This document shows, in pieces, positions 6,646-60,400 of a stretch of DNA of 64,000 nt (its first letter is position 1; every line of letters begins with the position of its first letter). The notes below the pieces were generated by a model, which was given only the letters and a program-made list of their open reading frames with translations, had not been told where the DNA came from and did no database searches. Source of the DNA: Macrostomum lignano (lineage: Eukaryota); NCBI GenBank assembly GCA_002269645.1, contig NIVC01003480.1, positions 31,938-95,937 on the forward strand, given 5' to 3'. Made by a program: the position numbers and the translations under genes.

Positions 6646-7419
6646 TATCAGTAGCACAAAATAGGCATATTTCGTGTTTCGTGTTAGCTAGTTAATAAAT
6701 TTGTTTATTTTGTTTTTATCTTAACAATGAAGCTATTAAATACTTTATGCAGCACTGGGGCAGGTATCGCCCATTGTGCGGAAGAGTGAGCAACTACATC
6801 ACGAATTGATTTTCCCATAAATAGATTTCTGGCCCTACTTTATCTGCTTCTTCCTATCCGCCCCAATTCACTCGCGTTCTTGACAGCTGACTGTATTTTT
6901 AAACCTACTAGCCGCAATCAGTAGGATGTAACCTCTCTAATTTTGTTATAACTACTGTTAAACTACTTATTGATAAGTAGTATAAAAATTATATATAGAT
7001 AAAATAGTCTTTCGACTGTAAAAAATTACACATTCGCGGTATATTGTTTAGCGCCATGGATTTTCTGCAGCTGAATTAAGCTTGAAGATCGTAACTCTAT
7101 AATAGAAATGTACGTCTGGCGTTATCGACTTATTGTAGTTTTTCCAAAATAAGAAATTAACTTACTTGCCTCGATCAGAAGCGTATCATATAAATAGACC
7201 TTTTAGTCAGTTGTTTTTGTACTTATTTTCATTTGATACTGTGACACTGCGGCTGTGTGTCACCAAGTAGGCATTCTGCGGTCACGTGCTGCATCACGAG
7301 ACTGCCTTCACTGCGTCATCTCACTGCGCCAGACAAACACACTTTGAGCGCTTACAGAGACGTTAAGTAAGAGATACTAAGTAGCTGATTCTAGACTTAT
7401 GCGTATGCAGATACCGCCA

Positions 7420-10027: not shown

Positions 10028-10200
10028 ACCATGGCCCTCTAAGGTCACAGCTGCTTTGCCTTATGCATCGCTATCTTCAGAACTCCGCACTGAGGAACGC
10101 CCATTCTGCGTCTCCGCAGTGTTGAGAATACGGAGCACTTCATCGGAGAGGTGCACCACTGCGAGGTGTCACTACCTCTTTCGAAATTTTCAGACCCGAG
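10028..10200 (+). mobile_element. Degenerate 3' (CCHC region) fragment of a related LINE
   Basis: ACCATGGCCCTCTAAGGTCACAGCTGCTT (10028-10056) is 26/29 identical to 11326-11354. Broken translation gives TMAL*GHSCF..HRYLQ..PFC..NTEHFIGE, parallel to TMTLSGHGCFSRHQYLQ..CSFC..TAEHFVSIC. Confidence 0.65.
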
Positions 10201-10230
10201 AATCTCTGCGTACAGCAGGTAGTTCGACCT

Positions 10231-11747
10231 CTGCAGCTATACGGCAGGGATATTGCCTTCGCGCACCAGACCAGATGTCTCGGGGTCATACTTGATCACC
10301 GGCTCAACTGGTCCTTCCACGTGAAAGCAAAAGCCAAGCGTGCCTCAGCCATCCTGGCCCAGCTCCGACGGGCACTTGGCACCTCTTGGGGTCTTTCCCC
10401 AAAGCGGCTTTGGCGGATCTACACTTCCGTAGTTAGACCTGCCATTACGTAAGCCTCGGTTGTCTGGGTTAGCGCTACCCAGGTCAAAAGCCATGCAGAT
10501 TTGCTCAACACGATCCAGGGCAGAGCGTGTAGGCTTATCTGCAACGCCACCAGGTCCACGCCCTTTGCCGGCATGGGGGCCTTCCTTAATCTACCGCCTC
10601 TCGACCTCTTCGTCAGGGGTGAGGCGGCTAGAACGACGCGGCGTTTACTTGATGCCGGTGTCAAATTCCTTTACATGAGGGCACCTGCTAAGCGGAACCT
10701 CGTCCCGCATAGCGAACTGTGCCTCAACATTCTCAACGAGTGTCAGGCCAATCGCGTCTTCACCGATGGCATTGCCTCAACGCTCAACCTGAGACAACGC
10801 TACTCCACTGGAACCCCGGTGAGCTTCATTGCTACACCGACGGTTCTAAGCAGTCAGCCAACACCGGTTTTGGTGTTGGAATCTTCCTGAACGGGAGGGT
10901 CATCGCAACCCGGTAAGAACCGGTAAGAACATCATTTTCCATTCGGACAGCCAAGCTGCCTTGCACGCCATCAGTGGCTGTATTCTGCTACAGTCCTCGA
11001 CTGTATCAAACTCCTCAACAAGTTGGGCTCCACCAACAAAATCACCCTTAAGTGGGTTCCGGGGCATGTGGGGATCCGAGGAAATGAGTTGGCTGACGCC
11101 CTTGAAAAAGTTGGCGCCTCCGGCTCCTCTCTCGGTCCCGAACCCCTTGTCCCGATTCCTGGCTGTGTCATCGACTCGCGCATCAAAGCGTGGATCAGGA
11201 CTCAGCACCGCTCGACTTGGGCGAACTGCACTACCTGCAGGCAATCCAGAGGCGCTGTCCCTCAGCCCTCTCACCAGCTCCGGAAGATCTTCTTGCGCCT
11301 CTCGCGCAGAGACATCCGGGCTGCCACCATGACCCTCTCAGGTCACGGCTGCTTCTCTAGGCACCAGTACCTGCAGGGCAACGCCATCAACGCCATCTGC
11401 AGTTTCTGTAACTCAGGTGACGAAACCGCTGAGCATTTCGTCAGCATCTGTCCCGCCTTTACGCGAGCCAGACTCACTTACCTCGGGCCACACACATCTA
11501 TTACTGAAGCGTGCAAACCCGAAAACTTTAATCAGCTCATGCGCTACCTCCGGGCCACCCGCAGGGCTGAACTCTCCTTTCCAGAGAGCACTATAGCTGC
11601 TGGCGACACTGGGGGACCTCCCTGGGCGGCGCCAACCCTTCGTCCATAGCGACGCGTCGGCCGTTCAGGGATTAGCGGAATGGGCGCCCGCGCCTTCCCG
11701 CTGTGTCCCCTCCGGGACAGCCCTGCAGCTAAGTCAAGTAAGTCAAG
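10231..11747 (+). mobile_element. 5'-truncated, inactivated non-LTR retrotransposon (R1/I-group-like ORF2 end: RT thumb, RNase H, CCHC)
   Basis: CLGVILDHRLNW..WGLSPKRLWRIYTSVVRPAIT*ASVVW (TAA at 10450). RNase H motifs YTDGSK, HSDSQAAL, LKWVPGHVGIRGNELAD. CSFCNSGDETAEHFVSICP finger. At least three frame breaks. (TAAGTCAAG)2 tail at 11730-11747. Confidence 0.9.
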
Positions 11748-12021
11748 CAGGTAGTTCTATAGTTTTATTCCATTTCGTTAATTCAGTTACACTGAACCTG
11801 TCAGTCTCCGTTGATTTACCATCCTGGCCATGGGAAAAAAGTGCAGTCAGTATACACTGGCAACATTGAAAAGTTTCCACTTTCGCGCCGTTTAGAGTTT
11901 CAAAACTGGTTTTTGTCGCCAGACTCGTGCCATAGACGATTGATGATTTCGTCAACACGCACTTGGGCCATAGACAAAAACTTGGGTCATAGACGCCAGA
12001 CAGATCGAAGGAAACAGTCAC

Positions 12022-13307
12022 ATGGAGCAGACAGGAGCAGCTTACAGGAGTCTAAAATCCACGTTGACCCTTCGCGCGCTAGGGTGGAAACTTTTCAATA
12101 TTGCTGAGTGTAAATAAGTCATCATGAGATTGCTGGGATATTCCATTTTAAAACCGATTATAGCATTTTCCTGGCTTGATCCAGCCTAGGAGCAAGCAAG
12201 TAGCCCAGCCATTGAGGACTTGCTTTCATTGTCTATGGCCCAAAAAGGGGGTCCCTTGGAGCAACCAATTTGAGAATTCAGTCTTTTCCATAGTTGTGCC
12301 AATGTTTCCAAAAGACAGATTTCATTAGACAAACATGGATGCCAATTGTCTTTGGTTGTTCCTTCAGAGGGAGAGAGAAAGAGATAAAGCGAGGCAGGAG
12401 CCAATAGAAAACTTTCCTGCAACTCTCTACACCGCGGTCCACTGCGCTATTTCGGTCAATGGTTTGTTCCTGATAATAAGACCGTAGTTTTCCAGCAACC
12501 ATAAAAATAAAGCCCAACAACCCAATTGCAGCTGCATGCAGTTCTCTGTTCACAGCGATGCAGGGGCTAAACGTTGCCAATCCGCCCAGCTACGAGGAGT
12601 CTGAATGGCTTCATCAAGCTGCCGCTATTCAAGCTACGAGTAGCCGCTTGAACCGGCTGTCCTACCTAATAACGGCGATAATTTGCGTCGAAAAGCGAGA
12701 CTTTGCCCTGTCGCATGCCAGATGCGAGGGCTGCGCCCACTGCCTGGCTGCTAGGCGGGTCGCCACCCCGCGCGAGGCTCGACAACTGGTCCAGTCTGCC
12801 TTCCTGACTGGCCACCTGCCCTGTTGCTACAGTGCCAACCAGCCAGTTGAGTTCGTATTCTTTCAAACCACTGCTCCGAGGGGCCTATTAAGGTTGTGTC
12901 TGATACCTCTGACCCGACTCAGCCTGCCAAGTCCGGAGCTGTTCAATCGAACCAGCTGGACTTCGAAGGACGCCGACCAACTGGAGGCTGTCAAGGCCGC
13001 GGTGATTCGCCAAGCTCGAACAGTCTGCTCAGTTTGCATGGCCGAATTTCCGCCAGCTGCCGGTGGTGTCCGAGCGGCTTACGGCATCCGCAGGCTGTTT
13101 AAGATCAACGTCGGCGAGCAGAGAGTCCAGACGGCGACCAGGGAGCTTCAGGACAGCCACTTTGCTGACCAGGTTGCTCTGGCGGTGGACGCAGCGACGA
13201 AGAAGCTGCTGAGAGACTTGAAGGCAACAACCGATGGAGAGCCCGCTTCGGTGCTCGGCTACCGGCATGCCGTTTTGGAGTCGGCGCTGCCTGCCGGCCT
13301 TTGCTGA
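12022..13307 (+). CDS. Uncharacterised Cys-rich protein, putative two exons (about 279 aa)
   Basis: A non-repetitive 249-codon ORF (12558-13307) is preceded by the acceptor TTCTCTGTTCACAG ending at 12555. Candidate exon 12022-12109 (ATG..GAGT|GTAAAT) joins in frame. No family recognised. Confidence 0.55.
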
Positions 13308-13499: not shown

Positions 13500-13772
13500 G
13501 AAAATAGAATGGATTGCTAATCTAGCCAATACATGGATGCAGGAATAGAATGGATTGCTAATCTAGCCAATACATGGATGCAGGAATAGAATGGATTGCT
13601 AATCTAGCTTACATTAATGCAGGAATAGAATGGATTGCTAATCTAGCCAATGCTTGAATGCAGGAACAGGATGGATTGCTAATCTAGCCAATGCTTGAAT
13701 GCAGGAACAGGATGGATTGCTAATCTAGCCAATGCTTGAATGCAGGAATAGGATGGATTGCTAATCTAACCC
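13500..13772. repeat. 41-bp minisatellite, same family as 55470-57612
   Basis: GAATAGAATGGATTGCTAATCTAGCCAATACATGGATGCAG. Confidence 0.92.
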
Positions 13773-15210: not shown

Positions 15211-21316
<6,106 letters not shown>

Positions 21317-37579: not shown

Positions 37580-40391
37580 ATGACTTTAGACAAAAATGAT
37601 CCCGCAAAGGTGTTTCGCATCAAAATCATTAGCATGGGCAACTCGGATACCGGCAAGGTGAGCTAGTGTCTGCGTGTGTACTTTTAAATAATAATTTGAC
37701 TATTTTTCGCTGTGAATATTGCGAAAAGCAATCATTTAACTATTGTTTCTTTCTTTTAAAACAGAGCTGCATTATTAAACGCTACTGCGAGAAACGATTC
37801 GTACAAAAGTACTTGATGACCATCGGTATCGACTTTGGCGTTACTAAGTACGTTATGAACTTTGCAACCGTTTATTATGAAGCTCAGAGTTTGCTGGGCC
37901 AGCCTCCCAGATATCAGTTGCTGTACCAGCCTCCCAGATCCCCAGTTGCTAGGCCAGCCTCCCAGATCCTCAGTTGCTGTACCAGCCTCCCAGATATCAG
38001 TTGCAGTTGCTGTACCAGCCTCCCAAATCCCCAGTTTCTGGGCCAGCCTCCCAGATCCTCAGTTTCTGGGCCAAGCCTCCCAGATCCTCAGTTGCTGGGC
38101 CAGCCTCCCAGATCCTCAGTTTCTGGGCCAGCCTCCCAGATCCTCAGTTGCTGGGCCAGCCTCCCAGATCCTCAGTTGCTGGGCCAGCCTCCCAGATCCT
38201 CAGTTGCTGGGCCAGCCTCCCAGATCCTTAGTTGCTGGGCCAGCCTCCCAGATCCTCAGTTGCTGGGCCAGCCTCCCAGATCCTCAGTTGCTGGGCCAGC
38301 CTCCCAGATCCTCAGTCGCTGGGCCAGCCTCCCAGATCCTTAGTTGCTGGGCCAGCCTCCCAGATCCTCAGTTGCTGGGCCAGCCTCCCAGATCCCCAGT
38401 TGCTGGGCCAGCCTTCCAGATCCTCAGTTGCTGGGCCAGCCTCCCAGATCCTCAGTTGCTGGGCCAGCCTCCCAGATCCTTAGTTGCTGGGCCAGCCTCC
38501 CAGATCCTCAGTTGCTGGGCCAGCCTCCCAAATCCTCAGTAACCCTGGTGCTCTCCTCGTCTCCCCAGAGTGACAGTGGGCGACCGCGACGTCAAAGTGA
38601 ACATCTTCGACTTCGCTGGCCATCCCGTGTTCTACGAGGTCCGCAACGAGTTTTACCGCGACGTCCAAGGCGTCATGCTAGTCTATGACGTCACCAACCG
38701 GGCCAGCTTTGAATCCTTAGACGCCTGGATCAAGGAGATGAAATCTGAACTGGGCGCCAAGCATATTGCCGAGTTCGACTCCGCGTATTTTGTAGTCTGC
38801 GCCTATAAGGTTTGAATATCACTTAGAAATATTGTCCGTTAAATGTGGGTGACAGTGGAAATGAGAGTGAGAAGAGAAGTGTTGAAAAGGAGAGGATGAG
38901 ATGATGGGAGAGTAGGAAAAGAGAGGAGAGTATAGAATAGGAGGGGAAGAGAAGAAGAGAGGAGGGGAAGAGGAGAAGAGAGGAGGGGAAGAGGAGAAGA
39001 GAGGAGGGGAAGAGAAGAGAGGAGGGGAAGAGGAGAAGAGAGGAGGGGAAGAGGAGAAGAGAGGAGGGGAAGAGGAGAAGAGAGGAGGGGAAGAGAAGAG
39101 AGGAGGGGAAGAGAAGAGAGGAGGGGAAGAGGAGAAGAGAGGAGGGGAAGAGGAGAAGAGAGGAGGGGAAGAGGAGAAGAGAGGAGGGGAAGAGGAGAGT
39201 AGGAGAGAGGGTTGACGAGGGAGAGAGAAGAGTAGAGGTGACTGAGGAGAGGAATGGGAAGAGAAGAGGTGGAGATGAAGAGGAGAAGGGGGGAGAGGAG
39301 AGGCGCCAGTCGATGCGCAGGTAGCGAGTAGGCAAGTAGCCTTTGTCCGTTGCGCTTATCCATCAGCACACGCACAAGGTGTCCAGCGGGCCTGACTATC
39401 TCATCCTCAGGCAGTATATACACATTATATTTTCAATCTGGCAGGTGGACAAGAAGCAGGCGCGAGTTGTTGACGAACTCGAAGGTCGCCTGTGGTCAGA
39501 TGCGCGCGGCTATCCGTACTTTGAGACCTCGGCTCTGAATGGCGACGGGGTCAGCGAGATGTTCAAATGCCTATTCGACGGTGTCGTGGAGGCCGTGATC
39601 TCCGGAAAGAAGCCGCAGCCGATTCCTGTGCAGCTGGGCTACAACACCGAACAGATTGAAGCTATTAAGAAGCTGAAGAGTGGCAGAGACAACTACGAGA
39701 GACTGGGCGTCGCTCAGAATTGCACTAAGTGAGTTCCTGATCTTCTACCATGCTCATTGTTAAGTCTCGCCATTCTCATCCCTCAGTCCCGCCATTATTA
39801 TCCCTACCCCAGTCTGGCCAGTCCCTACCCCAGTCCCGCCAGTCCCTACCCCAGTCCCGCCAGTCCCTACCCCAGTCCCGCCAGTCCCTACCCCAGTCCC
39901 GTTAGTCCCTACCCCAGTCCCGCCAGTCCCTACCCTAGTCTGGCCAGTCCCTACCCCAGTCCCGCCAGTCCCTACCCCAGTCTGGCCAGTCCCTACCCCA
40001 GTCTGGCCAGTCCCTACCCCAGTCCCGCCAGTCCCTACCCCAGTCCCGCCAGTCCCTACCCCAGTCCCGCCAGTCCCTACCCCAGTCCCGCCAGTCCCTA
40101 CCCCAGTCTGGCCAGTCCCTACCCCAGTCCCGCCAGTCCCTACCCCAGTCCCGCCAGTCCCTACCCCAGTCTGGCCAGTCCCTACCCCAGTCCCGCCAGT
40201 CCCTACCCCAGTCCCGCCAGTCCCTAACCGGCAGTGGACCCGCGGCGCCCCGCAGAGAGGACATAAACAAGGCGTACCGCCGCCTGGCCGTGCTGCTGCA
40301 CCCGGACAAAAGCGTCGCTCCTGGCAGCGAGGAGGCTTTTAAAATTCTTGTCAATGCGCGAAATCAACTGCTGTTGAATGTGAAACAGTGA
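37580..40391 (+). CDS. DNAJC27: DNAJC27/RBJ (Rab-like GTPase with C-terminal J domain), 273 aa
   Basis: Exons 37580-37657, 37765-37847, 38569-38809, 39445-39728, 40256-40391 (822 nt). [61 protein letters not shown]. Confidence 0.95.
37890..40226. repeat. Intronic arrays of DNAJC27: 28-bp, purine-rich about 21-bp, and 21-bp
   Basis: 28-bp unit as at 7420 (37890-38540); GA-rich tract (38870-39300); CCAGTCCCGCCAGTCCCTACC (39800-40226). Confidence 0.92.
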
Positions 40392-42727: not shown

Positions 42728-43000
42728 ATGGTGCACAAAGGCCTGGGCCAGGGCATGGCCTATGTTCGGGGCATCATCTACTATTCGGTGTCGCCGAACG
42801 AGCTGCACCCGTTCCGCGGCCTGCTCACCAAGGCTCCCTGGAATGCGTTGCGCCGGGTCAGCGAAGAATTCTTTCGCGTTGTGCCGCCATTCGCTGGCGC
42901 CTACCTGATCATCACCTGGGGCAAGGAGGCCAACGAGAAAACTAAGCGAAAGGACCCGGCCTTCTTTGAGCAGGAGGCTGCTCAGAATGGCGAGCTATGA
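42728..43000 (+). CDS. UQCRQ: Cytochrome bc1 complex subunit 8 (QCR8), 90 aa
   Basis: GIIYYSVSPNELHPF..NALRRVSEEFFRVVPPF..YLIITWG..KRKDPAFFE matches the UQCRQ pattern. Confidence 0.9.
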   Translation: MVHKGLGQGMAYVRGIIYYSVSPNELHPFRGLLTKAPWNALRRVSEEFFRVVPPFAGAYLIITWGKEANEKTKRKDPAFFEQEAAQNGEL

Positions 43001-43569
43001 GAAACTGCTAATTAATATTTTTAATTAACCCAAACTATATTACACGCGAAGCCCAATTCTACTACTGGGAAAGTAGCATCTTGCGAGTAGTTAGATCAGT
43101 AGTGTTTAAGTAGGTAGATCTACTAAACCGCCCCACCCTCTCTATCAACTCCGTGTAACATCGCCTCTCTTCTGTTGCTCAGAAATAGAATGAAAGTTTA
43201 AAATAATTAATCAACTAGATAGTAATAAATATTACATCATTTCAAGTTTTCGTCTTACGCCTGTCTTATTTCTGCCGTAAGGCATGCAATGCCCAAGCTT
43301 TTGTTTATGCGCGCATTTCAAGTGGGCTCTTGAAACGTGTTACTATGCGCAGAGAATTCGCCAGGTGCGTCCGTGTGTTAGCCTGCACCTATTCAGCATA
43401 TATATGAGATAGTCCATAACTTTATTGGAGTTGCTTATTTTATCTACCAGCTGTTTACTCAGACAGTCCAATCCGATTTAACGGTAAGTTTTATCTGTCA
43501 AGACAATCTGTATTTTGCTTTGTTAACAGAGACCCCTGTTGGGCATGCAAAATAATTTGACGAGGGGCG

Positions 43570-44290
43570 GTGGCGCTACCTGAACAGCTGACAATGGGTA
43601 TGGCGCTACCTGAACAGCTGACAATGGGTGTAGCGCTACCTGAACAGCTGACAATGGGTATGGCGCTACCTGAACAGCTGACAATGGGTATGGCGCTACC
43701 TGAACAGCTGACAATGGGTGTGGCGCTACCTGAACAGCTGACAATGGGTATGGCGCTACCTGAACAGTTGACAATGGGTATGGCGCTACCTGAACAGCTG
43801 ACAATGGGTGTGGCGCTACCTGAACAGTTGACAATGGGTATGGCGCTACCTGAACAGCTGACAATGGGTATGGCGCTACCTGAACAGCTGACAATGGGTG
43901 TGGCGCTACCTGAACAGCTGACAATGGGTATGGCGCTACCTGAACAGCTGACAATGGGTGTAGCGCTACCTGAACAGCTGACAATGGGTATGGCGCTACC
44001 TGAACAGCTGACAATGGGTGTGGCGCTACCTGAACAGCTGACAATGGGTATGGCGCTACCTGAACAGCTGACAATGGGTATGGCGCTACCTGAACAGCTG
44101 ACAATGGGTGTAGCGCTACCTGAACAGCTGACAATGGGTATGGCGCTACCTGAACAGCTGACAATGGGTATGGCGCTACCTGAACAGCTGACAATGGGTA
44201 TGGCGCTACCTGAACAGCTGACAATGGGTATGGCGCTACCTGAACAGCTGACAAAGGGTATGGCGCTACCTGAATAGCTGACAATGGGTG
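43570..44290. repeat. 30-bp intergenic minisatellite
   Basis: TGGCGCTACCTGAACAGCTGACAATGGGT(A/G). Confidence 0.95.
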
Positions 44291-44464
44291 TGCGCCGAAG
44301 GAGTTGCGACAGCTCGTGCTCGCAGCCCTCCTGCGAGGGGTCAAGGGATCAAGGGATGCAGTGCCAGAATTGATTAGTTAAAGCAATTACTTTGCCGATA
44401 AACCGATGATTTGCGTCGAGCTAAAAGTACCTCGAAGAAATGAAACACTTCCGTCCAGACCGCC

Positions 44465-45077
44465 ATGTCCTCCGACTCCGCTGCCGCGCTGCCCCGCCCG
44501 CACTCTGCGCTAGTCGTCGATGGCCCCGACCGCGCCGGCGCCCGCTCGATGCTACGCGGCGTCGGATTGAAAAGCGCCGATTTTGCCCGGCCGCAGGTTG
44601 GCGTGGTGTCCTGCTGGGCCACCGTCACTCCGTGCAATTTGAATCTGCGCGAGCTGCAGGACCTGGCGGGTGAATCGGTCCGCGAGGCCGGGCTGGTGCC
44701 GATGCACTTCAACACCGTCACGGTCAGCGACGGCATCAGCATGGGCACGCCTGGCATGCGGCTGTCGCTGATCAGCCGCGAGGTCATCGCCGACTCCATC
44801 GAGACGGTGACGCTGGCCGAAGGCTTTGACGGCCTGGTCTGCCTGGGCGCCTGCGACAAGAACATGCCAGGCATGGCCATGGCCATGTTGCGGATCAACC
44901 GGCCCGCCCTGTTTGTCTACGGTGGCAGCATCCTGCCCGGCTGCGGCCCGAAGGGCGACAAGGTGGACATCCGCACCGTCTATGAGGCCATCGGCGGCTA
45001 CCACAAAGGCAGCGTCAGCGACAAGGTTGGCGATCGGACTGTCTGTCCACGTGTCTGCCTGTCTGCCTGTATGTCTA

Positions 45078-45148
<71 letters not shown>

Positions 45149-47744
45149 TATTCGTCCCACCCCCACCGCGGCAGGAGCTGTCGGACATTGAGGAGTGCGC
45201 CATCCCGGGGCCGGGCTCCTGCGCGGGCATGTACACCGCCAACACAATGTCCTGCGCCCTGGAGGCTATGGGCCTCGCTCTGCCCGGCGACGCCTCGCCG
45301 CCGGCCGTCAGTGAAGAGAAACGGCGCCAGGCGCGCCATCTGGTTGGCGCCGCGCTAGCCAACATGATGCGGTGCGGGATTCGGCCGCGCGACATTGTCA
45401 CGAGACAGGCGCTGGAGAATGCGGCCGCCGTGGTTTCCGCGCTGGGCGGCTCCACCAACGCCTGCCTGCATCTGGTAGCCATCGCCAGGGAGGCCGGCCT
45501 GGCTGACTTTGGCCTGGACGAACTCCAATCGGTGTTCCAGCGAACCCCGTGCTGGCTGACCTGTTCCCCAGCGGCTGCCACGCCATGGCCGACCTGCACG
45601 AGGCTGGCGGGCTTCGGCCGCTGCTCCGCCGCATGCTGTCAGCCGGCCTGCTGCACGGCTCGGCCGTCACCTGCACCGGCCGGACACTTGCCGAGGATCT
45701 GAAAGGAGTGGAGGATTATCCAGCAGGGCAGAAGGTTATTCGGCCAATGTGTGAGATATCCAGCCAATCAGCGCTCTACGCACTCATTTAACATTTCTAT
45801 CCCTGGTTAACCCCGCCAGCCAATCAGCACTCTCCGCACTCATCCCACATTTTCTATCCCTGCTGAACCGCACCAGCCAATCAGCGCTCTCCACACTCAT
45901 TCTTTAAACTTTCTACCCTCAGTAATGCACGCCAACCAATCGTGATCTATCTTTAACCTTGCTTTCTAACAGCCGATCCGATTAAAGCTACCGGTCATCT
46001 GATAATCTTCCGCGGCAGTCTCTGCCCGAACGGCGCCGTTGGCAAACTTATCGGCGACGAGGGCGACAGCTTCTCCGGCCCGGCTATCGTGTATGAAAAT
46101 GAGGAGGCCGCCTATGTCGGCGTCTCTCGCGGACAAGTCCAACCTGGCCACGTTGTTGTTGTGCGTAACGAGGGACCGGTCGGAGGGCCCGGCATGCGGG
46201 AGATGCTGGCCGTGACAGCTGCTATTCAAGTAAAAATTACTAATAAATCTCTATGCTAGCATAACCGTGTCTGTACATGTACTCTAGGATGTACATGTAC
46301 ATCGCCAAACCGCCCAATAATGACATTTTAAATCAACCCTTTAAAGCTTTCAGCAACCCTAATTTATTGGTTCTATAATAAAAGCAAGAGAAGCCTAAGC
46401 AGGCCACTCTTAGCCACAATGTACGCACGCCCGAATAAGCCTCTCTCCCCCCAATCTACGCACACACGAATAAGCCTCTCTCCCCCTAATCTACGCACAC
46501 CCGAATAAGCCTCTCTCCCCCCAATCTACGCACACACGAATAAGCCTCTCTCCCCCCAATCTACGCACACACGAATAAGCCTCTCTCCCCCCCCAATCTA
46601 CGCACACACGAATAAGCCTCTCTCCCCCCAATGTACGCACGCCCGAATAAGCCTCTCTCCCCCCAATCTACGCACACACGAATAAGCCTCTCTCCCCCAA
46701 TGTACGCACACCCGAATAAGCCTCTCTCCCCCAATGTACGCACACCCGAATAAGCCTCTCTCCCCCTAATCTACGCACACCCGAATAAGCCTCTCTCCCC
46801 CTAATCTACGCACACACGAATAAGCCTCTCTCCCCCCAATCTACGCACACACGAATAAGCCTCTCTCCCCCCCCCCAATCTACGCACACACGAATAAGCC
46901 TCTCTCCCCCCAATGTACGCACGCCCGAATAAGCCTCTCTCCCCCAATCTACGCACACACGAATAAGCCTCTCTCCCCCAATGTACGCACACCCGAATAA
47001 GCCTCTCTCCCCCAATGTACGCACACCCGAATAAGCCTCTCTCCCCCTAATCTACGCACACCCGAATAAGCCTCTCTCCCCCTAATCTACGCACACACGA
47101 ATAAGCTTCTCTCCCCCCAATCTACGCACACCCGAATAAGCCTCTCTCCCCCCAATCTACCCACACACGAATAAGCCTCTCCCCCAATGTACGCACACCC
47201 GAATAAGCCTCTCTCCCCCAATGTACGCACACCCGAATAAGCCTCTCTCCCCCTAATCTACGCACACCCGAATAAGCCTCTCTCCCCCTAATCTACGCAC
47301 ACACGAATAAGCCTCTCTCCCCCCAATGCACGCACGCCCGAATAAGCCTCTCTCCCCTAATTACGCACGCCTAAATAACCCTCCCTGAAAATTTTACAGG
47401 GCCGGGGCCTGTCTGGCCGCGTAGCTCTGATCACGGACGGCCGCTTCTCTGGCGCCACGAAGGGTTTTGTAGTTGGTCACGTGACCCCAGAGTCAGCTGT
47501 CGGCGGGCCAATCGGCGCGCTTCGCACCGGCGATCAAATTGAAATCGACGGTCCCGGCCGACAAATTAATGTCCGACTGGCCGAGTCCGAACTGGCCGCC
47601 CGACTGTCCGAGGCGGCTACGGTGGCTGCGGAGGCTTCGGCCGAGGCGAAAGCGGACCCACCGGGAGGATCTCGCACCTCCGTGTTGGCGAAGTACAGAC
47701 GGCTGGTCAGACAGGCTGATGAAGGAGCCATTGTGGTTTCGTGA
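44465..47744 (+). CDS. ilvD: Dihydroxy-acid dehydratase (IlvD/Edd family, 2Fe-2S-type motifs), about 579 aa, with one apparent 1-nt frameshift
   Basis: Exons 44465-45025, 45175-45750, 45973-46229, 47400-47744 total 1739 nt, one short of a multiple of 3. Motifs [68 protein letters not shown]. Confidence 0.93.
45050..47375. repeat. Repeats in the three ilvD introns
   Basis: (CTGT)n at 45050-45147; three 57-bp CAGCCAATCAGC units (45760, 45817, 45874); about 36-bp GAATAAGCCTCTCTCCCCCCAATCTACGCACACAC (46425-47375). Confidence 0.9.
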
Positions 47745-48299
47745 GGGTGATCGACTGCTTTGAGTCATTTGACCTCTTCTGTCATCTGTGTCGGATAAGG
47801 TTGGCATACTTGTTGATAATATTTTTATTAATTTGATGAGCCTGTTCGATTAACTGTTTAATGAGCTGTTTAAAAAGAAATTCTAGATATTCTGCGTGAA
47901 ATTCAGTGTTACAAGATCCTTTACCATTAGGTAAAACTAAAATGTCCTACGTACTACTACTAATGACAGTTTCAAGTAGTAAACTTTATGCGTGTTCTTT
48001 ATTTTGCATTGGTGTTTGAATTTTTTCTTGCTTTTACTAGTAATGTTTCTTTCAATATTCACTAATTAGCTGAATAAATTAATGCCTTGGTTAAGGTGAT
48101 TAAGTTCTTTAATTGTGTTTTTCATTGTTTAGTGAAAATGAATTCATGTTTTGTTAATTTGCAATAAATTTTCAACGGCTGTTTCATTCTCGAGTTTGCA
48201 AGTTCTGATTATTAAATAGTCAATTAACGGACTTGAAGTTAGCGGGCTTTTTATTCATTTTTTGCACTTTTTCTCATTCTTTGACTTCAGCTTTGCTTT

Positions 48300-50710: not shown

Positions 50711-51008
50711 ATATAACTCATTCTAAAACTATAATGCCGAAATTAATTACATTTATGTGTTCGTTTCGCCTATGGTTCATAATCAAATACTGATGAGCTC
50801 TCATTGGCCGGCATATATCATTCAATTTTCACCCTTTTCTAATTGGCTGTCTTAGCCCCCTCCTCGGGCCAATTAGAAGTCCGACTTGTGTAGCTGTTAA
50901 GTAGAAAGAAATTATCTGTATTTGAAGCACCTGATTATTTCAGGCTAATCAGAACTTCATTCTTCACTGTTTTTAAAAAAAAAACAACTATTTTAAAACA
51001 AAATTTTC

Positions 51009-52224
51009 ATGGACAACTCACTGCAAGTCGCCGCCGCTTCTGCCGCCCCGCTTCCGCCCCCGCTTCCGCCCCCGCTTCCGCCCCCGCTTCCGCCCCCGCT
51101 TCCGCCCCCGCTTCCGCCCCCGCTTTCGCCCCCGCTTCCGACAGGCTTAAATTTGGCGTCTCTGCAATTCTCAACATTGGCTGCTCAGCCAGCCGCTTCC
51201 GGATGCTGGGGCCGCTTCCGCCTCCGCCGCACTTGCTGCTTCAAGCTCAACAGCACCGACTGCTGCTTTCCCATGCTGCTGCTAGTCCAGGCTCTGCGCC
51301 TCATCATAGCGGCGCCTTTGCGTCTGCAACAGCTGACAGCGGTGAGTGGCCCTCACGCGCCCCAATTCAAAATCGCCCAATTCAAAATCGCCCAGTTCAA
51401 AATCGCTCCTAAAAATTGCCCCTAAAAATCGCCCCTAAAAATCGCTCCTAAAAATTACCGCTTTGTCGATCGCCTTCCACGCAGGCCTGCAGCAGCCCCT
51501 GCCGCCGCTGAGCCAGCTGCAGACCCTTCATCATCAGCTGTTGCAGCTGCAGCAGCACCAGCAGCACCTCCTTCAAAGCCAGCTGCAGTACCAGCTGCAG
51601 CACCAGCTCCAGCCTCAGTCTCAATTTCTACCAGTCGTTGATGCAAGCCCTGTCCGTGACGGAGTCGGTGGCGTCAGCGGCCGAGTCATTGGTGGAGTCC
51701 TTCGTCGGGCCGTGTTCAGCGAATCGCAGCGACGCGGCCTCGAGAAGGCCTTCCAGCAGCAGAAGTACATCGGCAAGCCCGACCGGAGACTGCTGGCTGA
51801 CAGGCTGGGACTGAGAGACTCTCAGGTGAGACTGCTGGCTGACAGGCTGGGACTGAGAGACTCTCAGGTGAGACTGCTTGCTGACAGGCTGGGACTGAGA
51901 GACTCTCAGGTGAGACTGCTGGCTGACATGCTGAGACTGAGAGAATCTCAGGTGAGACTGCTGGCTGACATGCTGAGACTGAGAGACTCTCAGGTGAGAC
52001 TGCTGGCTGACATGCTGAGACTGAGAGACTCTCAGGTGAATCTCAGGTGGTATTAGCCAGATTCAGATGGGGAACTATCAGTAGTTGGTAGTTGGTTAGA
52101 AGATGAACTATTGATCCTTTAATCCCTTCTATCTGCCCTCGCTCCCGCCTTCCAGGTGAAGATCTGGTTCCAAAATCGCAGGATGAAGTGGCGCAACGCC
52201 AAGGAACGCGAAAGCAGCGATTAA
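51009..52224 (+). CDS. Dbx: Dbx-class homeobox protein, about 247 aa, with one apparent 1-nt frameshift in exon 1
   Basis: Exons 51009-51341, 51485-51825, 52156-52224. eh1 motif LKFGVSAIL. Homeodomain LRRAVFSESQRRGLEKAFQQQKYIGKPDRRLLADRLGLRDSQ|VKIWFQNRRMKWRNAKERE. Confidence 0.92.
51786..52038 (+). repeat. 42-bp repeat spanning the Dbx exon 2 donor (six copies)
   Basis: AGACTGCTGGCTGACAGGCTGGGACTGAGAGACTCTCAGGTG; CAG|GT at 51826, 51868, 51910, 51952, 51994, 52036. Confidence 0.95.
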
Positions 52225-54475: not shown

Positions 54476-57400
54476 CTAATTGATCATCCTCATCACTGCG
54501 GACCACGGATTGATAGCTGCAGACTCCATCTGATTCCGGGGCGGCAACTCGTAAGGTGGAAAATCTCCAACTTTGAAAAGTTGAACGTTGAAAGCAATTA
54601 AATTTTACAATTGTTAAGATTCACTTTATTGGCACGATAGATTTCCTCACTGCCAAAAAGTTTTGACATTTTTTCGCGTTCTACTACTCAGATATCATGT
54701 AGTAAGTAGTAGCAGAGTGGGGACATTACTGTGCTTTTTGGTAATTTGCAATTTTTCCTGCCTCTATGTATGCCTCTAATTCACTCATAAACTCGCTCAT
54801 AACCTCACTCATGAACTCACTCATGAACTCACTCATAAACTCACTCATGAACTAAGTCATGAACTCACTCATGAACTCACTCGTAAAGTCACTCATTCAG
54901 TAGGTTTATAATTTTTTACAAAAGCGTAAAATTAAAAAAACAAATGCATTTCTATACTTCATTATTAATAGTAGTACAATAAAGTAGAAGCATAGGTGTA
55001 TAATCTGAAGATTACACATGAAATTTTCGATCCTCACATGCCTATATTAATGATTCCAGACACATCCGGTTCCCGAAATCATGCACTAATTCTCCCTCAC
55101 TTACTTCCGCCTAGTGTCTCCCAGCAACCACCAAGAGGGGCGGATCGAAGCTTGGGATTGTGAAGAGGGGAAGGAATCACGAGGCAGCCGTGCAAATTCC
55201 TATACTGTGGCTCGTAAAGTCCTAATTTGGGCAGCGTGTGCAAGGGACTGGGGGGGGGGGGCTGGTGCCCACCAGGTGCCATGCGGTTCCGAAAACTTGG
55301 TTGGGCACAGAGCTTACCTACAAAAAGGACAACTTCTAATCCAACAGACGGACTGCCGCTAGGGTGCAAGTGGGTCTTGCGGACAGCCATTGACCGCGGT
55401 ATAGTTTAAAGGACAGCCGTGTGCAATGCTGATTTATGACAGTGGGTCACTTTTGGGGATCAGCGAGTTCAATGGATTGCTAATCTAGTCTGCGTGGAAT
55501 AGAATGGATTGCTAATCTAGCCAATACACGGATGCAGGAATAGAATGGATTGCTAATCTAGCCAATACACGGATGCAGGAATAGAATGGATTGCTAATCT
55601 AGCCAATGCACGGATGCAGGAATAGAATGGATTGCTAATCTAGCCAATGCACGGATGCAGGAATAGAATGGATTGCTAGTCTAGCCAATACACGGAATGC
55701 AGGAATAGAATGGATTGCTAATCTAGCCAATACACGGGTGCAGGAATAGAATGGATTGCTAATCTAGCCAATACACGGATGCAGGAATAGAATGGATTGC
55801 TAATCTAGCCAATACATGGATGCAGGAATAGAATGGATTGCTAATCTAGCCAATACACGGATGCAGGAATAGAATGGATTGCTAATCTAGCCAATACACA
55901 GATGCAGGAATAGAATGGATTGCTAATCTAGCCAATACACGGATGCAGGAATAGAATGGATTGCTAATCTAGCCAATACACGGATGCAGGAATAGAATGG
56001 ATTGCTAATCTAGCCAATACACGGATGCAGGAATAGAATGGATTGCTAATCTAGCCAATACACGGATGCAGGAATAGAATGGATTGCTAATCTAGCCAAT
56101 ACACGGATGCAGGAATAGAATGGATTGCTAATCTAGCCAATACACGGATGCAGGAATAGAATGGATTGCTAATCTAGCCAATACACGGATGCAGGAATAG
56201 AATGGATTGCTAATCTAGCCAATACACGGATGCAGGAATAGAATGGATTGCTAATCTAGCCAATACACGGATGCAGTTATAGAATGGATTGCTAATTTAG
56301 CCAATACACGGATGCTGGAATAGAATGGATTGCTAATCTAGCCAATACATGGATGCAGGAATAGAATGGATTGCTAATCTAGCCAATGCACGGATGCAGG
56401 AATAGAATGGATTGCTAATCTAGCCAATACATGGATGCAGGAATAGAATGGATTGCTAATCTAGCCAATACACGGATGCAGGAATAGAATGGATTGCTAA
56501 TCTAGCCAATACACGGATGCAGGAATAGAATGGATTGCTAATCTAGCCAATACACGGATGCAGGAATAGAATGGATTGCTAATCTAGCCAATACACGGAT
56601 GCAGGAATAGAATGGATTGCTAATCTAGCCAATACACGGATGCAGGAATAGAATGGATTGCTAATCTAGCCAATGCACGGATGCAGGAATAGAATGGATT
56701 GCTAATCTAGCCAATACACGGATGCAGGAATAGAATGGATTGCTAATCTAGCCAATACACGGATGCAGGAATAGAATGGATTGCTAATCTAGCCAATACA
56801 CGGATGCAGGAATAGAATGGATTGCTAATCTAGCCAATACACGGATGCAGGAATAGAATGGATTGCTAATCTAGCCAATACACGGATGCAGGAATAGAAT
56901 GGATTGCTAATCTAGCCAATACACGGATGCAGTTATAGAATGGATTGCTAATTTAGCCAATACACGGATGCTGGAATAGAATGGATTGCTAATCTAGCCA
57001 ATACATGGATGCAGGAATAGAATGGATTGCTAATCTAGCCAATGCACGGATGCAGGAATAGAATGGATTGCTAATCTAGCCAATACATGGATGCAGGAAT
57101 AGAATGGATTGCTAATCTAGCCAATACACGGATGCAGGAATAGAATGGATTGCTAATCTAGCCAATACACGGATGCAGGAATAGAATGGATTGCTAATCT
57201 AGCCAATACACGGATGCAGGAATAGAATGGATTGCTAATCTAGCCAATACACGGATGCAGGAATAGAATGGATTGCTAATCTAGCCAATACACGGATGCA
57301 GGAATAGAATGGATTGCTAATCTAGCCAATGCACGGATGCAGGAATAGAATGGATTGCTAATCTAGCCAATACACGGATGCAGGAATAGAATGAATTGCT

Positions 57401-60400
57401 AATCTAGTTAATACACGGATGCAGGAATAGAATGGATTGCTAATCTAGCCAATACACGGATGCAGGAATAGAATGAATTGCTAATCTAGTTAATACACGG
57501 ATGCAGGAATAGAATGGATTGCTAATCTAGCCAATACACGGATGCAGAAATAGAATGGATTGCTAATCTAGCCAATGCACGGATGCAGGAACGGAATGGA
57601 TTGCTAATCTAACCTACATGGTCAGTGTGTGCCGGTCATTTTCTCATAAAATTCAATTAATTCTGCCCTGCGTAAACATTTCTGCTCAAAGGAAAACCGC
57701 AGTCGAATTGATCAGTGCACGATGCGAATCACGATTTTCCTTTGTTGAAAATCAATAATTTGGTGATTAACTTATTTTTAGCATCGTTGAAAAATTTTCG
57801 ATCCGTATGATAGCCATTGGGTGCCTGCCCTCAATCCGCTACCTGACACTCCGGTCTCTCACCTGACACTCCAGTCTCTATCTTGACAATCCAGTCTCTC
57901 ACCTGACACTCCAGTCTCTCGCCTGACACTTCAGTCTCTCACCTGACACTCCAGTCTCTATCCTGACACCCCAGTCTCTATCTTGACACTCCAGTCTCTC
58001 ACCTGACACTCCAGTCTCTCACCTGACACTCCAGTCTCTCACCTGACACTCCAGTCTCTCACCTGACACTCCAGTCTCTCACCTGACACCCCAGTCTCTA
58101 TCTTGACACTCCAGTCTCTCACCTGAAACTCCAGTCTCTCACCTGACACTCCAGTCTCGGTCCTGACACTCCAGTCTCTCACCTGACACCCCAGTCTCTA
58201 TCTTGACACTCCAGTCTCTCACCTGAAACTCCAGTCTCTCACCTGACACCCCAGTCTCTCACCTGACACTCCAGTCTCTCACCTGACACTCCAGTCTCTC
58301 ACCTGACACCCCAGTCTCTCACCTGACACTCCAGTCTCTCACCTGACACTCCAGTCTCTCGCCTGACACTCCTGTCTCACCTGACACTCCAGTCTCACCT
58401 GACACTCCAGTCTCTCACCTGACACCCCAGTCTCTATCTTGACACTCCAGTCTCCCACCTGACACTCCAGTCTCTCGCCTGACACTCCTGTCTCACCTGA
58501 CACTCCAGTCTCACCTGACACTCCAGTCTCTCACCTGACACCCCAGTCTCTATCTTGACACTCCAGTCTCTCACCTGAAACTCCAGTCTCTCACCTGACA
58601 CTCCAGTCTCTCACCTGAAACTCCAGTCTCTCACCTGACACTCCAGTCTCTCACCTGACACTCCAGTCTCTCGCCTGACACTCCAGTCTCTCACCTGACA
58701 CTCCAGTCTCTCACCTGACACTCCAGTCTCTCGCCTGACACTCCAGTCTCACCTGACACTCCAGTCTCTATCCTGACACCCCAGTCTCTATCTTGATACT
58801 CCAGTCTCTCACTTGACACTCCAGTCTCTCACCTGACACTCCAGTCTCTCACCTGACACTCCAGTCTCTCACCTGACACCCCAGTCTCTCACCTGACACT
58901 CCAGTCTCTCACCTGACACTCCAGTCTCTCGCCTGACACTCCTGTCTCACCTGACACTCCAGTCTCACCTGACACTCCAGTCTCTCACCTGACACCCCAG
59001 TCTCTATCTTGACACTCCAGTCTCCCACCTGACACTCCAGTCTCTCGCCTGACACTCCTGTCTCACCTGACACTCCAGTCTCACCTGACACTCCAGTCTC
59101 TCACCTGACACCCCAGTCTCTATCTTGACACTCCAGTCTCTCACCTGAAACTCCAGTCTCTCACCTGACACTCCAGTCTCTCACCTGAAACTCCAGTCTC
59201 TCACCTGACACTCCAGTCTCTCACCTGACACTCCAGTCTCTCGCCTGACACTCCAGTCTCTCACCTGACACTTTAGTCTCTCACCTGACACTCCAGTCTC
59301 TCGCCTGACACTCCAGTCTCACCTGACACTCCAGTCTCTATCCTGACACCCCAGTCTCTATCTTGATACTCCAGTCTCTCACTTGACACTCCAGTCTCTC
59401 ACCTGACACTCCAGTCTCTCACCTGACACTCCAGTCTCTCACCTGACACTCCAGTCTCTATCCTGACACCCCAGTCTCTATCTTGACACTCCAGTCTCTC
59501 ACCTGACACTCCAGTCTCTCACCTGACACTCCAGTCTCTCACCTGACACTCCAGTCTCTCACCTGACACTCCAGTCTCTCACCTGACACTCCAGTCTCTC
59601 ACCTGACACCCCAGTCTCTATCTTGACACTCCAGTCTCTCACCTGAAACTCCAGTCTCTCACCTGACACTCCAATCTCTCACCTGACACTCCAGTCTCTC
59701 ACCTGACACTCCAGTCTCTCACCTGACACCCCAGTCTCTATCTTGACACTCCAGTCTCTCACCTGAAACTCCAGTCTCTCACCTGACACTCCAGTCTCTC
59801 ACCTGACACCCTAGTCTCTCACCTGACACTCCAGTCTCTCACCTGACACTCCAGTCTCTCACCTGACACTCCAGTCTCTCACCTGACACTCCAGTCTCTC
59901 ACCTGACACTCCAGTCTCTCACCTGAAACTCCAGTCTTTCACCTGACACTCCAGTCTCTCACCTGACACCCAGTCTCTATCTTGACACTCCAGTCTCTCA
60001 TCTGAAACTCCAGTCTCTCACCTGACACTCCAGTCTCTATCTTGACACTCCGGTCTCTCACCTGACACTCCAGTCTCTCACCTGAAACTCCAGTCTCTCA
60101 CCTGACACTCCAGTCTCTCACCTGACACCCCAGTCTCTATCTTGACACTCCAGTCTCTCACCTGACACCCCAGTCTCTATCTTGACACTCCAGTCTCTCA
60201 CCTGAAACTCCAGTCTCTCACCTGACACTCCAGTCTCTCACCTGACACCCCAGTCTCTATCTTGACACTCCAGTCTCTCACCTGACACTCCAGTCTCTCA
60301 CCTGACACTCCAGTCTCTATCTTGACACTCCGGTCTCTCACCTGACACTCCAGTCTCTCACCTGACACTCTAGTCTCTCACCTGACACTCCAGTCTCGGT

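Follow-up and report, generated by a model that had tools for sequence, protein, structure and literature searches.

Animals are auxotrophic for the branched-chain amino acids (BCAAs), and dihydroxy-acid dehydratase (DHAD) is normally absent from them. To our knowledge, natural exceptions to this rule are few, and comprise bdelloid rotifers and insects with endosymbionts. A horizontally acquired DHAD in animals has published precedent in the bdelloid rotifer Adineta ricciae, where transcripts of a foreign ketol-acid reductoisomerase (KARI) and a foreign DHAD have been described, the latter being proposed to complete valine and isoleucine synthesis (Boschetti et al. 2012, PMC3499245). In sap-feeding insects, amino-acid-pathway genes have been reacquired by horizontal transfer, at least as Wilson and Duncan (2015) are summarised in PMC9560156. 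Here we describe a bacterial-type ilvD gene in the genome of the flatworm Macrostomum lignano; a literature search on an M. lignano ilvD gene found nothing.

Results

ilvD is embedded among host genes on three contigs

The window, meaning the whole 64,000-nt stretch of DNA that was analysed, is identical in sequence to M. lignano contig NIVC01003480.1 (GCA_002269645.1, Mlig_3_7 assembly), and a Macrostomum lignano UniRef entry contains an IlvD part with 100% identity to the frame-repaired ilvD product described below. On both counts the gene belongs to an animal genome, as the preliminary description had claimed. ilvD lies at 44465-47744 on the forward strand, in four exons separated by three GT-AG introns of 149, 222 and 1170 bp (Table 1), and its neighbours in the window are animal genes, as Pfam confirms. 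The order C2orf69-DNAJC27-UQCRQ-ilvD is common to three long-read (PacBio-based) contigs, on all of which ilvD is flanked on both sides by host genes with alike junctions, so that long-read contigs tie ilvD to animal genes three times over with gene order kept. Three copies are the normal state of the M. lignano genome (PMC10733133). The upstream neighbour encodes a protein 47% identical to human UQCRQ (tblastn), and the Pfam UcrQ model matches the called gene. The GenBank form of this UQCRQ is 112 aa long, with its start further upstream.

Contamination, or a chimeric assembly that joined bacterial to worm DNA, might be suspected from the GC content of the ilvD exons (0.60-0.68), which exceeds the window mean of 0.46. 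However, ilvD GC3 is 0.76 and equals that of host genes, falling inside the range of the neighbouring genes (0.66-0.79), while the three introns carry worm-type minisatellites, the gene is present in two assemblies, and the same junctions recur on three separate contigs. With no bacterium closer than 59% identity either, we consider an artefact of this kind vanishingly unlikely.

Removal of the three introns leaves a protein that is gaplessly colinear with solved DHAD structures over every exon junction, which bears out their earlier identification as GT-AG introns. All three are kept in all three genomic copies: introns 1 and 2 are 100% identical among them, and intron 3, at 1170 bp in the window copy, is 499 and 534 bp long in the other two. 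The introns had also been said to carry minisatellites like those of host genes. This is true of their style, as 20-60-bp minisatellites are abundant over the entire window (63 TRF rows), but not of their family; the intron minisatellite families were sought elsewhere in the window without a match, each being confined to its own intron.

Table 1. Features of the ilvD locus, in window coordinates
Feature	Position	Strand	Details
UQCRQ (cytochrome b-c1 complex subunit 8), upstream host gene	42728..42999	+	single-exon CDS, 90 aa
30-bp minisatellite, 24 copies	43571..44289	.	TRF; occupies most of the UQCRQ-ilvD spacer
Candidate 3' splice acceptor ttccgtccag	44449..44458	+	6 nt 5' of ATG; putative use
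ilvD exon 1	44465..45025	+	codons 1-187; C57 (TPCN), D89 (SDG), C130-D131-K132 (CDKNM)
Intron 1, 149 bp	45026..45174	+	GTTGGC...GGCAG; (TCTG)n run
ilvD exon 2	45175..45750	+	codons 188-379 and first base of codon 380; C203 (GSCAG)
C4 homopolymer, one base short	45545..45548	+	one base fewer than homologues and both paralogous copies (C5 in the latter); FQRTP/VLADL
Intron 2, 222 bp, phase 1	45751..45972	+	GTGAGA...CTAACAG; 57-bp x2.5 repeat
ilvD exon 3	45973..46229	+	rest of codon 380 to codon 465; E446 (EGP), GPGMREM
Intron 3, 1170 bp, phase 0	46230..47399	+	GTAAAA...TTTACAG; mostly 35-bp minisatellite
35-bp minisatellite, 27.8 copies, in intron 3	46417-47383		TRF
ilvD exon 4	47400..47744	+	codons 466-579 and TGA; catalytic S482 (DGRFSGAT), Ala-rich insert
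AT-rich 3' flank of ilvD, GC 0.31	48073..48168	+	sequence composition
Two AATAAA, candidate polyadenylation signals	48073-48078, 48163-48168	+	sequence; putative use

As assembled, the window copy lacks one base

The preliminary description had read a 579-aa spliced protein from the window. This does not hold for the assembled sequence, whose spliced CDS has 1739 nt and an interrupted frame, a one-base frameshift at 45545-45548 having been overlooked and silently repaired. The frameshift falls within a homopolymer and is peculiar to this copy, where it leads to a premature stop at 45700-45702 and a product that ends after 362 residues, ahead of the EGP/GPGMREM and DGRFSG motifs. At this run the L082 and L084 copies both have the extra C, and L084 (NIVC01001730.1) has an intact CDS of 1740 nt and 579 codons. 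L082 has a 1-nt deletion in a different homopolymer, so that only one of the three copies is in frame in this assembly. P0121, a window-type protein derived from ML2, an older assembly from the same PacBio reads, is in frame at the C-run. Because both other copies have C5, L084 is intact and the ML2 copy is in frame, the deletion in the window copy is probably a long-read consensus or assembly error, with no real lesion. Polishing is hampered in M. lignano because 93% of read pairs have more than one mapping position (PMC10733133).

The product matches branched-chain dihydroxy-acid dehydratase

Profile, residue and motif tests were done on the frame-repaired protein. It contains the ILVD_EDD_N (PF00920, 393.5 bits) and ILV_EDD_C (PF24877, 211.4 bits) domains, and scores 654 bits against the TIGR00110 ilvD equivalog (cut-off 618) and 729.5 against PRK00911/NF002068 (cut-off 644), while models of the arabinonate and xylonate (sugar-acid) enzymes and of Edd score far under their cut-offs. 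Judged by its sequence, the gene matches a dihydroxy-acid dehydratase (IlvD, EC 4.2.1.9) of the branched-chain class of IlvD/Edd. The Fe-S cysteines and the Mg and catalytic motifs listed in the preliminary description can each be located (TPCN at 55, SDG at 88, CDKN at 130, GSCAG at 201, EGP at 446, GPGMREM at 451 and DGRFSG at 478), and eight ligand or catalytic residues are kept (C57, D89, C130, D131, K132, C203, E446 and S482), all of them in columns that are at least 98% conserved. Homology to the IlvD model begins at residue 12, and the N-terminus (LPRPHSA.VVDGP.RA.ARSML) can be aligned with that of the bacterial protein P0008, so that no presequence has been added, in agreement with the transit peptide's reported absence.

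Alongside these conserved residues the protein has an unusual number of changes at near-invariant positions. Of 149 columns with at least 98% conservation across 315 homologues, it deviates at 14, where the 99th percentile of the homologues themselves is 4, and the deviant positions adjoining active-site residues include H60N, G129A, G204A, G484A and H486K. Among the motif variants are SGAT for SGGS/SGGT and GSCAG for GxCGG; G484A is shared with 5 of the 315 homologues and G204A with 4. Given the 14 deviations, enzyme activity or specificity may be altered. These substitutions showed no significant clustering next to active-site residues (4 of 22 sites near active-site residues against 10 of 127 elsewhere, P = 0.13), and for this reason we claim no active-site remodelling. 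Along a worm branch measuring about 0.65-0.69 substitutions per site, change has nevertheless reached only 9% of the near-invariant columns, versus 33% of the 90-98% conserved class, in keeping with selective constraint. A lineage-specific insert rich in Ala, about 15 residues long, lies ahead of the C-terminal helix.

Divergence of this sort could instead speak to neofunctionalization, in which the dehydratase would have come to act on another 2,3-dihydroxy or sugar acid, or would have changed in cluster or oxygen sensitivity. The outlying sites (PCNMH to PCNLN, GGCDKN to GACDKN, SCGG to SCAG and SGGSH to SGATK) and a pendant branch about twice that of the nearest bacterial relatives are in keeping with such a shift. 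However, CDKNM, which marks the branched-chain class, is kept, with the Gly before it replaced by Ala, and the CDKTT of the sugar-acid classes is absent (PMC9314677). Mutagenesis has shown a non-polar residue before the Thr of the SGGT-type motif to be necessary (PMC9314677), and the Ala of the worm's SGAT is such a residue. As the IlvD models also score far above their sugar-acid and Edd counterparts, and the odd sites show no significant enrichment near the active site, we regard a new function as distinctly improbable, and a branched-chain DHAD as the preferred assignment.

Phylogenetic evidence points to a bacterial source

Bacterial proteins match the worm protein best (53-59% identity), ahead of those of fungi and plants (45-49%). 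At 26 clade-diagnostic positions it shares the fungal/plant state at none and the bacterial state at 19. We carried out likelihood placement with simplified code of our own (empirical rate matrix, gamma rates, fixed neighbour-joining backbone), in which the eukaryotes were fungi and plants only. The worm protein was placed among bacteria as sister to the bacterial P0059, whose gene is located in a leuCD-leuB-ilvE-ilvBN-ilvD operon. Moving it to the eukaryote stem cost 29 lnL units on one of two backbones and 103 on the other, and moving it inside the fungal/plant clade cost 140. A neighbour-joining tree on Kimura distances did join the worm protein to fungi and plants at 60% bootstrap, but we reject this grouping as long-branch attraction, since no clade-diagnostic residue is shared and the gamma-rate likelihood contradicts it on both backbones.

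We are unable to name a donor. No relative exceeded 59% identity in a word-indexed search of 5.8 billion proteins, and an exhaustive comparison with 1.84 billion cluster representatives brought up none closer; the nearest sequences, P0059 and P0002, are from uncultured bacteria at no more than 59% identity, and Verrucomicrobiota and Gammaproteobacteria are found near them. Other animal sequences were absent from the best matches in these collections.

These results also bear on vertical retention, by which an ancestral eukaryotic (mitochondrial-type) DHAD would have been kept in Macrostomum and lost in other animals. The introns and host codon usage would suit such a history, as would the neighbour-joining tree with its simple distance correction. 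On the other hand, the lack of any shared fungal/plant synapomorphy-like position, the lower identity to fungi and plants than to bacteria (58-59%), the likelihood deficits, the missing presequence, the failure to find an orthologue in any other animal in the databases searched, and the many independent losses required make it highly improbable. The worm protein thus falls outside the fungal/plant DHAD clade, and the proposal that a bacterial-type gene was acquired horizontally and domesticated gains support from placement, linkage, introns, host-like GC3 and an excess of synonymous changes. There is good support for a horizontal transfer that preceded the genome triplication.

Selection and transcript evidence

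The three copies are separated by 10 exon substitutions, 7 synonymous and 3 nonsynonymous (P about 0.005-0.016), and the synonymous excess reaches exons 3 and 4, 3' of the frameshift. The corresponding dN/dS is about 0.16. Since introns 1 and 2 show zero substitutions between copies, low exon divergence is partly regional, and within this comparison it is the synonymous-to-nonsynonymous ratio, at 10 sites, that points to selection.

The sole transcript-derived CDS on record at the locus is an unspliced 297-aa ORF that extends out of exon 1 into intron 1; no gene has been called in either of the other copies. GenBank mis-annotates ilvD as this 297-aa hypothetical ORF, and in UniProt one ilvD copy is fused to UQCRQ and wrongly named. 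Two older gene models, P0001 and P0121, splice out all three introns; no contig encoding P0001 is on record. A collection of 15 billion proteins, with assemblies of public sequencing runs among its sources, contained no exact match to the 579-aa protein, a 582-aa form starting at an SL-derived ATG, the frameshift-truncated form or four single-exon ORFs.

Both older models use the boundary of the candidate acceptor upstream of the ATG (Table 1), with P0001 starting TAMSS and P0121 joining UQCRQ codon 51 to this boundary. The M. lignano SL ends in ATG, and an ATG so derived would be in frame with ilvD (ATG ACC GCC ATG). The acceptor at 44449..44458 could be an SL trans-splice site; its GTCCAG fits the published flatworm trans-acceptor motif, [T/C]TNCAG, at 5 of 6 positions, the TNCAG part matching. 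SL trans-spliced downstream genes of flatworm operons are expected to have a repeat-corrected distance of less than 1000 bp to the upstream gene on the same strand. Here the acceptor lies about 1.2 kb from the UQCRQ AATAAA (43224-43229), and discounting the 719-bp minisatellite leaves about 0.5 kb.

The transcript record and the frameshifts could together describe a decaying relic, a gene once functional and now being lost in rediploidisation. The frameshifts of two of the three copies would then be real and the transcripts unspliced read-through from UQCRQ, with enzyme produced from one copy only or not at all. Such decay would account for the deletions in the window copy and L082, the unspliced annotation, the changes at near-invariant positions and the missing full-length protein in run-derived sets. 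Against it stand the intact L084, the in-frame ML2 copy of window type, the location of both deletions in homopolymers of a PacBio/Canu assembly whose polishing is hampered by multi-mapping, the synonymous excess past the frameshift, and the retention of every catalytic residue. We consider decay unlikely.

Discussion

Taken together, we put at roughly three in four the probability that this locus records an old bacterial ilvD transfer that has been domesticated and is kept in all three subgenome copies, the deletion being an assembly error. In such a history, a bacterial DHAD gene would have been taken into the nuclear genome in the Macrostomum lineage, prior to the recent triplication of that genome, inserting downstream of host UQCRQ at a distance of about 1.5 kb and in the same orientation. 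It would later have gained three spliceosomal introns with host-type tandem repeats, a host-like third-position composition and an AT-rich 3' flank, and purifying selection would have retained it in each of the subgenome copies. The mature mRNA may start at the acceptor 6 nt 5' of the ATG, possibly through SL trans-splicing of a UQCRQ-ilvD precursor. Its product would be a cytosolic Fe-S/Mg enzyme that lacks a presequence and dehydrates 2,3-dihydroxy acids to 2-keto acids (2-ketoisovalerate and 2-keto-3-methylvalerate), which a host branched-chain aminotransferase could convert to valine or isoleucine. Its dihydroxy-acid substrates might come from ilvB/ilvC-type genes of the worm, from its food or from microbes.

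Partial BCAA synthesis as the role of ilvD in the worm is speculation. A bolder and doubtful extension is that M. lignano has regained part or all of valine/isoleucine synthesis, together with that of the pantothenate precursor, with ilvD among several bacterial genes (ilvC, ilvB/H) expressed via SL trans-splicing or operons. If this were true, a tractable animal would be naturally prototrophic or semi-prototrophic for an 'essential' amino acid. M. lignano is a laboratory model flatworm with transgenesis and RNAi, and a bacterial-type DHAD gene fixed in such an animal makes its use of the gene directly testable. The locus also raises the questions of where an Fe-S enzyme without a presequence would work, and of whether landing downstream of a host gene, in combination with SL trans-splicing, helped a promoterless bacterial gene to become domesticated.

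Among known systems, the worm protein most resembles the short form of bacterial IlvD (TIGR00110/PRK00911), with which it shares two-domain architecture, approximate length, the three Cys ligands, the Asp-Lys Mg site in CDKNM and the catalytic Ser, and whose N-terminus can be aligned with its own from about residue 8. It also has the bacterial PGMREML in place of the PGMPEML of fungi and plants. It differs from the bacterial form in being encoded by a nuclear gene with three introns and no pathway operon partners, in its identity of at most 59%, and in carrying the Ala-rich insert and 14 near-invariant substitutions, SGAT for SGGS/T among them. Fungal Ilv3 and plant chloroplast DHAD (PDB 9ix7, 5ze4 and 8hs0) share the family, fold and catalytic residues at 45-49% identity; however, they have organellar presequences, which the worm protein lacks, and form a clade of their own that adjoins a Chitinophaga (Bacteroidota) sequence in the backbone tree.

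M. lignano is a free-living diatom feeder, and we know of no obligate endosymbiont partner for it. In sap-feeding insects, as summarised, nuclear genes of bacterial origin likewise patch essential-amino-acid pathways, but there the other steps come from an obligate endosymbiont with which the transferred genes cooperate. A. ricciae, like M. lignano, is an animal with a horizontally acquired DHAD, but belongs to a different phylum and has a reported KARI partner. Since no close relative of the worm gene turned up in any of the collections searched, it appears to have been acquired independently of the rotifer gene. The evidence from the rotifer is transcriptomic, whereas that from M. lignano is genomic, in the form of synteny, introns and three subgenome copies.

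Identity and origin of the gene

All protein-level results refer to the 579-residue Macrostomum lignano IlvD obtained by adding one base to the window's coding sequence. This repaired protein carries both IlvD/Edd Pfam domains and exceeds the cut-offs of the NCBIfam ilvD equivalog (654 vs 618) and of PRK00911 (729.5 vs 644), while falling far under those of the arabinonate, xylonate and Edd models. All eight Fe-S/Mg-binding or base residues are kept (C57, D89, C130, D131, K132, C203, E446 and S482), and the protein has the CDKNM motif that marks the branched-chain class, sugar-acid classes having CDKTT (Melse et al., PMC9314677). The preliminary description reported no transit peptide, and we agree, since homology to IlvD starts at about residue 8-12 and leaves no room for a presequence. 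The protein is unusual in departing from 14 of 149 columns with conservation of 98% or more among 315 homologues (99th percentile of the homologues, 4); the changes include H60N, G129A, G204A, G484A (SGAT for SGGS/T) and H486K. The proximity of these 14 substitutions to the active site was not significant (P = 0.13).

That ilvD reached the worm by horizontal transfer is well supported by sequence comparison. Apart from the best database match, which is itself an M. lignano UniRef entry, the nearest sequences are bacterial, at 53-59% identity, and come from Verrucomicrobiota, Gammaproteobacteria, Acidobacteriota and uncultured lineages. Identity of the worm protein to fungal and plant dihydroxy-acid dehydratases (DHADs) is 45-49%; between fungal and plant DHADs it is 62%. 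Nothing closer came up when 1.84 billion cluster representatives were scanned exhaustively with HMMER. The worm protein is there the representative of a 50% cluster of its own, and the best other representatives with a named source are bacterial. A simple neighbor-joining tree did group the worm protein with the fungal/plant clade (60% bootstrap), but this grouping is contradicted by diagnostic columns and by likelihood placement. At the 26 columns separating the fungal/plant clade from bacteria, the worm never has the eukaryotic residue, has the bacterial residue at 19, and has another at 7. For the placement, an approximate method with limited eukaryote sampling, the worm protein was tried on every branch of an optimized backbone, using an empirical rate matrix from the alignment and four gamma categories. 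A 77-taxon backbone places it best as sister to P0059, a protein of an uncultured bacterium whose gene lies in a leuCD-leuB-ilvE-ilvBN-ilvD operon; on the eukaryote stem the likelihood is 29.4 lnL lower (RELL 0.017), and inside the fungal/plant clade it is 140 lnL lower. A broader 51-taxon backbone that includes 50%-cluster representatives again favors P0059 and a second bacterial protein, P0002, with the eukaryote stem 102.6 lnL worse. Together, these columns and placements uphold the original proposal of a bacterial-type, horizontally acquired gene. The worm protein sits on a long pendant branch (0.64-0.69 substitutions per site), and with the nearest bacteria at no more than 59% identity, the searches and placement do not allow a donor lineage to be named. 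In the backbone tree, the fungal and plant DHAD clade adjoins a Chitinophaga (Bacteroidota) sequence, apart from the worm gene's bacterial group, which hints that the canonical eukaryotic DHAD may have a separate bacterial affinity.

Gene structure and reading frame

Three-frame translation of 44400-47800 gives four IlvD-like blocks on the + strand, and exon and intron limits were set from homology and splice signals (see table). When joined, the exons align to solved DHAD structures without gaps over every junction, in keeping with the three introns described.

Features of ilvD and other annotated features in the window
Feature	Position	Strand	Size and limits	Basis or content
ABC transporter exons (ABC_membrane + ABC_tran)	2804-4752	+		domain content
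RNase H domain, reverse-transcriptase-like long open frames	10126-11646	+		between ABC-transporter and Cys-loop receptor genes
Cys-loop ligand-gated ion channel exons	16451-19184	+		domain content
GenBank 297-aa CDS	44465-45358 (11804-12697 of the contig record)			no Pfam match on record
ilvD exon 1	44465-45025	+		homology, splice signals
ilvD intron 1		+	149 bp, GTTGGC...GGCAG	holds (TCTG)n run
ilvD exon 2	45175-45750	+		homology, splice signals
ilvD intron 2		+	222 bp, GTGAGA...CTAACAG, phase 1	holds 57-bp repeat
ilvD exon 3	45973-46229	+		homology, splice signals
ilvD intron 3	46230-47399	+	1170 bp, GTAAAA...TTTACAG	holds 35-bp x27.8 minisatellite
ilvD exon 4	47400-47744	+		homology, splice signals

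The introns had also been said to share the minisatellite style of host genes. This stands insofar as 20-60-bp minisatellites are abundant throughout the window, with the qualification that each ilvD intron array is, by comparison within the window, confined to its own intron. The introns of the ABC transporter and Cys-loop channel genes are likewise crowded with minisatellites. Elsewhere, two families, one with a 28-bp unit (GCCAGCCTCCCAGATCCTCAGTTGCTGG) and one with a 41-bp unit (AATAGAATGGATTGCTAATCTAGCCAATACA...), reappear at far-apart sites (7416-7976 and 37891-38540; 13503-13768 and 55496-57611) and look like dispersed repeats rather than purely local arrays.

The claim of a full-length IlvD needs amendment for the window's copy. 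Its spliced coding sequence is 1739 nt, not a multiple of three, and the frame switches in exon 2 at the C4 run 45545-45548, with ...FQRTP on one side of the switch and VLADLFPSG... on the other. Unrepaired, the mRNA would reach a stop after 362 residues; one base added at the run restores the 579 residues originally described. Both other copies of ilvD in the assembly have C5 here, and a protein of the window's type (A41, M325, D551) is in frame in an older UniRef model, whose source we take to be ML2, another assembly of the same PacBio reads. Mlig_3_7 is a short-read-polished Canu assembly in which 93% of read pairs have more than one mapping position (PMC10733133 for multi-mapping). On these grounds the frameshift is probably a consensus error. 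The copy on NIVC01001730.1 is wholly intact (1740 nt, 579 codons). The copy on NIVC01001283.1 has a separate one-base loss in exon 2 (G4 to G3, equivalent to window 45204-45207), which points either to indel errors left in the coding sequence of Mlig_3_7 or to subgenome-specific decay.

Host linkage, copies and selection

The other genes of the window are all on the + strand and are ordinary animal genes: an ABC transporter, a Cys-loop receptor, C2orf69, FKBP12, a Ras/DnaJ protein, whose architecture we take to be DNAJC27-like, and UQCRQ. The open frames at 10126-11646 are probably a retroelement fragment, and downstream of ilvD (50894-51811) lie GC-rich, low-complexity open frames of doubtful coding potential, with runs of Ala-Ser-Ala-Pro and of Pro/Leu. 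A look-up of the UQCRQ protein led to three contigs of GCA_002269645.1 (Mlig_3_7), one of which, NIVC01003480.1, agrees with the window at 20339 of 20339 positions. The block C2orf69-DNAJC27-UQCRQ-ilvD occurs on all three contigs, with FKBP12 called on one, so the linkage of ilvD to animal genes is borne out three times. Three copies are normal in this neopolyploid genome, where three-copy blocks make up about 70% of the assembly and the coding SNP rate is 1.1% (PMC10733133). The three introns recur in every copy of ilvD, introns 1 and 2 without any difference. Intron 3 measures 1170 bp in the window vs 499 and 534 bp in the others, owing to different numbers of 35-bp minisatellite units. Intron 3 ends in TTTACAG in the window vs TTCCAG in the other two copies.

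Ten exon substitutions distinguish the copies, seven synonymous and three conservative (A41S, M325I, D551N), giving a dN/dS of about 0.16 and a binomial P for synonymous excess of 0.005-0.016, depending on the assumed transition bias. Five of the seven synonymous changes fall in exons 3 and 4, implying that these exons have been translated in the IlvD frame, for which they must be spliced. Given one intact copy, this pattern of purifying selection and the retained catalytic residues, we predict that ilvD is likely functional.

At third codon positions ilvD is similar in composition to its surroundings, with a GC of 0.76 against 0.66-0.79 in neighboring host genes; the high overall GC of ilvD is due to first and second codon positions. 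A candidate splice acceptor (ttccgtccag) lies 6 nt upstream of the ATG. One older UniRef model, P0001, starts exactly at this acceptor (TAMSS...), and another, P0121 (A0A1I8ISI1), joins UQCRQ codon 51 to it. In M. lignano, trans-splicing acceptors follow the motif [T/C]TNCAG and the last bases of the SL are ATG; genes of one operon are within 1 kb of each other once repeats are subtracted (PMC8629364). An SL-borne ATG would keep the ilvD frame here, and the repeat-corrected UQCRQ-ilvD spacer is about 0.5 kb, so a UQCRQ-ilvD transcription unit with ilvD as its downstream gene is plausible. P0121, in the same UniRef cluster as the best match, agrees with the repaired protein at all 579 residues (100% identity) and has 51 additional N-terminal UQCRQ residues. 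It joins the first 51 codons of UQCRQ (42728-42880) to ilvD from 44459 across a weak donor (cgcgtt/GTGCCG), and UniRef gives it the name 'Cytochrome b-c1 complex subunit 8'. The model is either an artefact of gene prediction or reflects cis-splicing inside a polycistronic precursor. At ilvD, the transcript-based GenBank annotation of the window's contig has only an unspliced 297-aa ORF that begins in exon 1 and continues into intron 1, and no gene is called on either paralogous contig; direct expression evidence is weak.

Comparison with known cases

We found no literature on this ilvD gene in Macrostomum, and its place is best seen beside precedents in other animals. Foreign KARI and DHAD transcripts have been described in the bdelloid rotifer Adineta ricciae, where they were proposed to complete valine and isoleucine synthesis (Boschetti et al. 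2012, PMC3499245), and horizontal transfers that patch amino-acid pathways have also been described in symbiont-bearing insects (PMC9560156). The M. lignano ilvD is thus an addition to a known kind, a foreign DHAD having already been published for a bdelloid rotifer.
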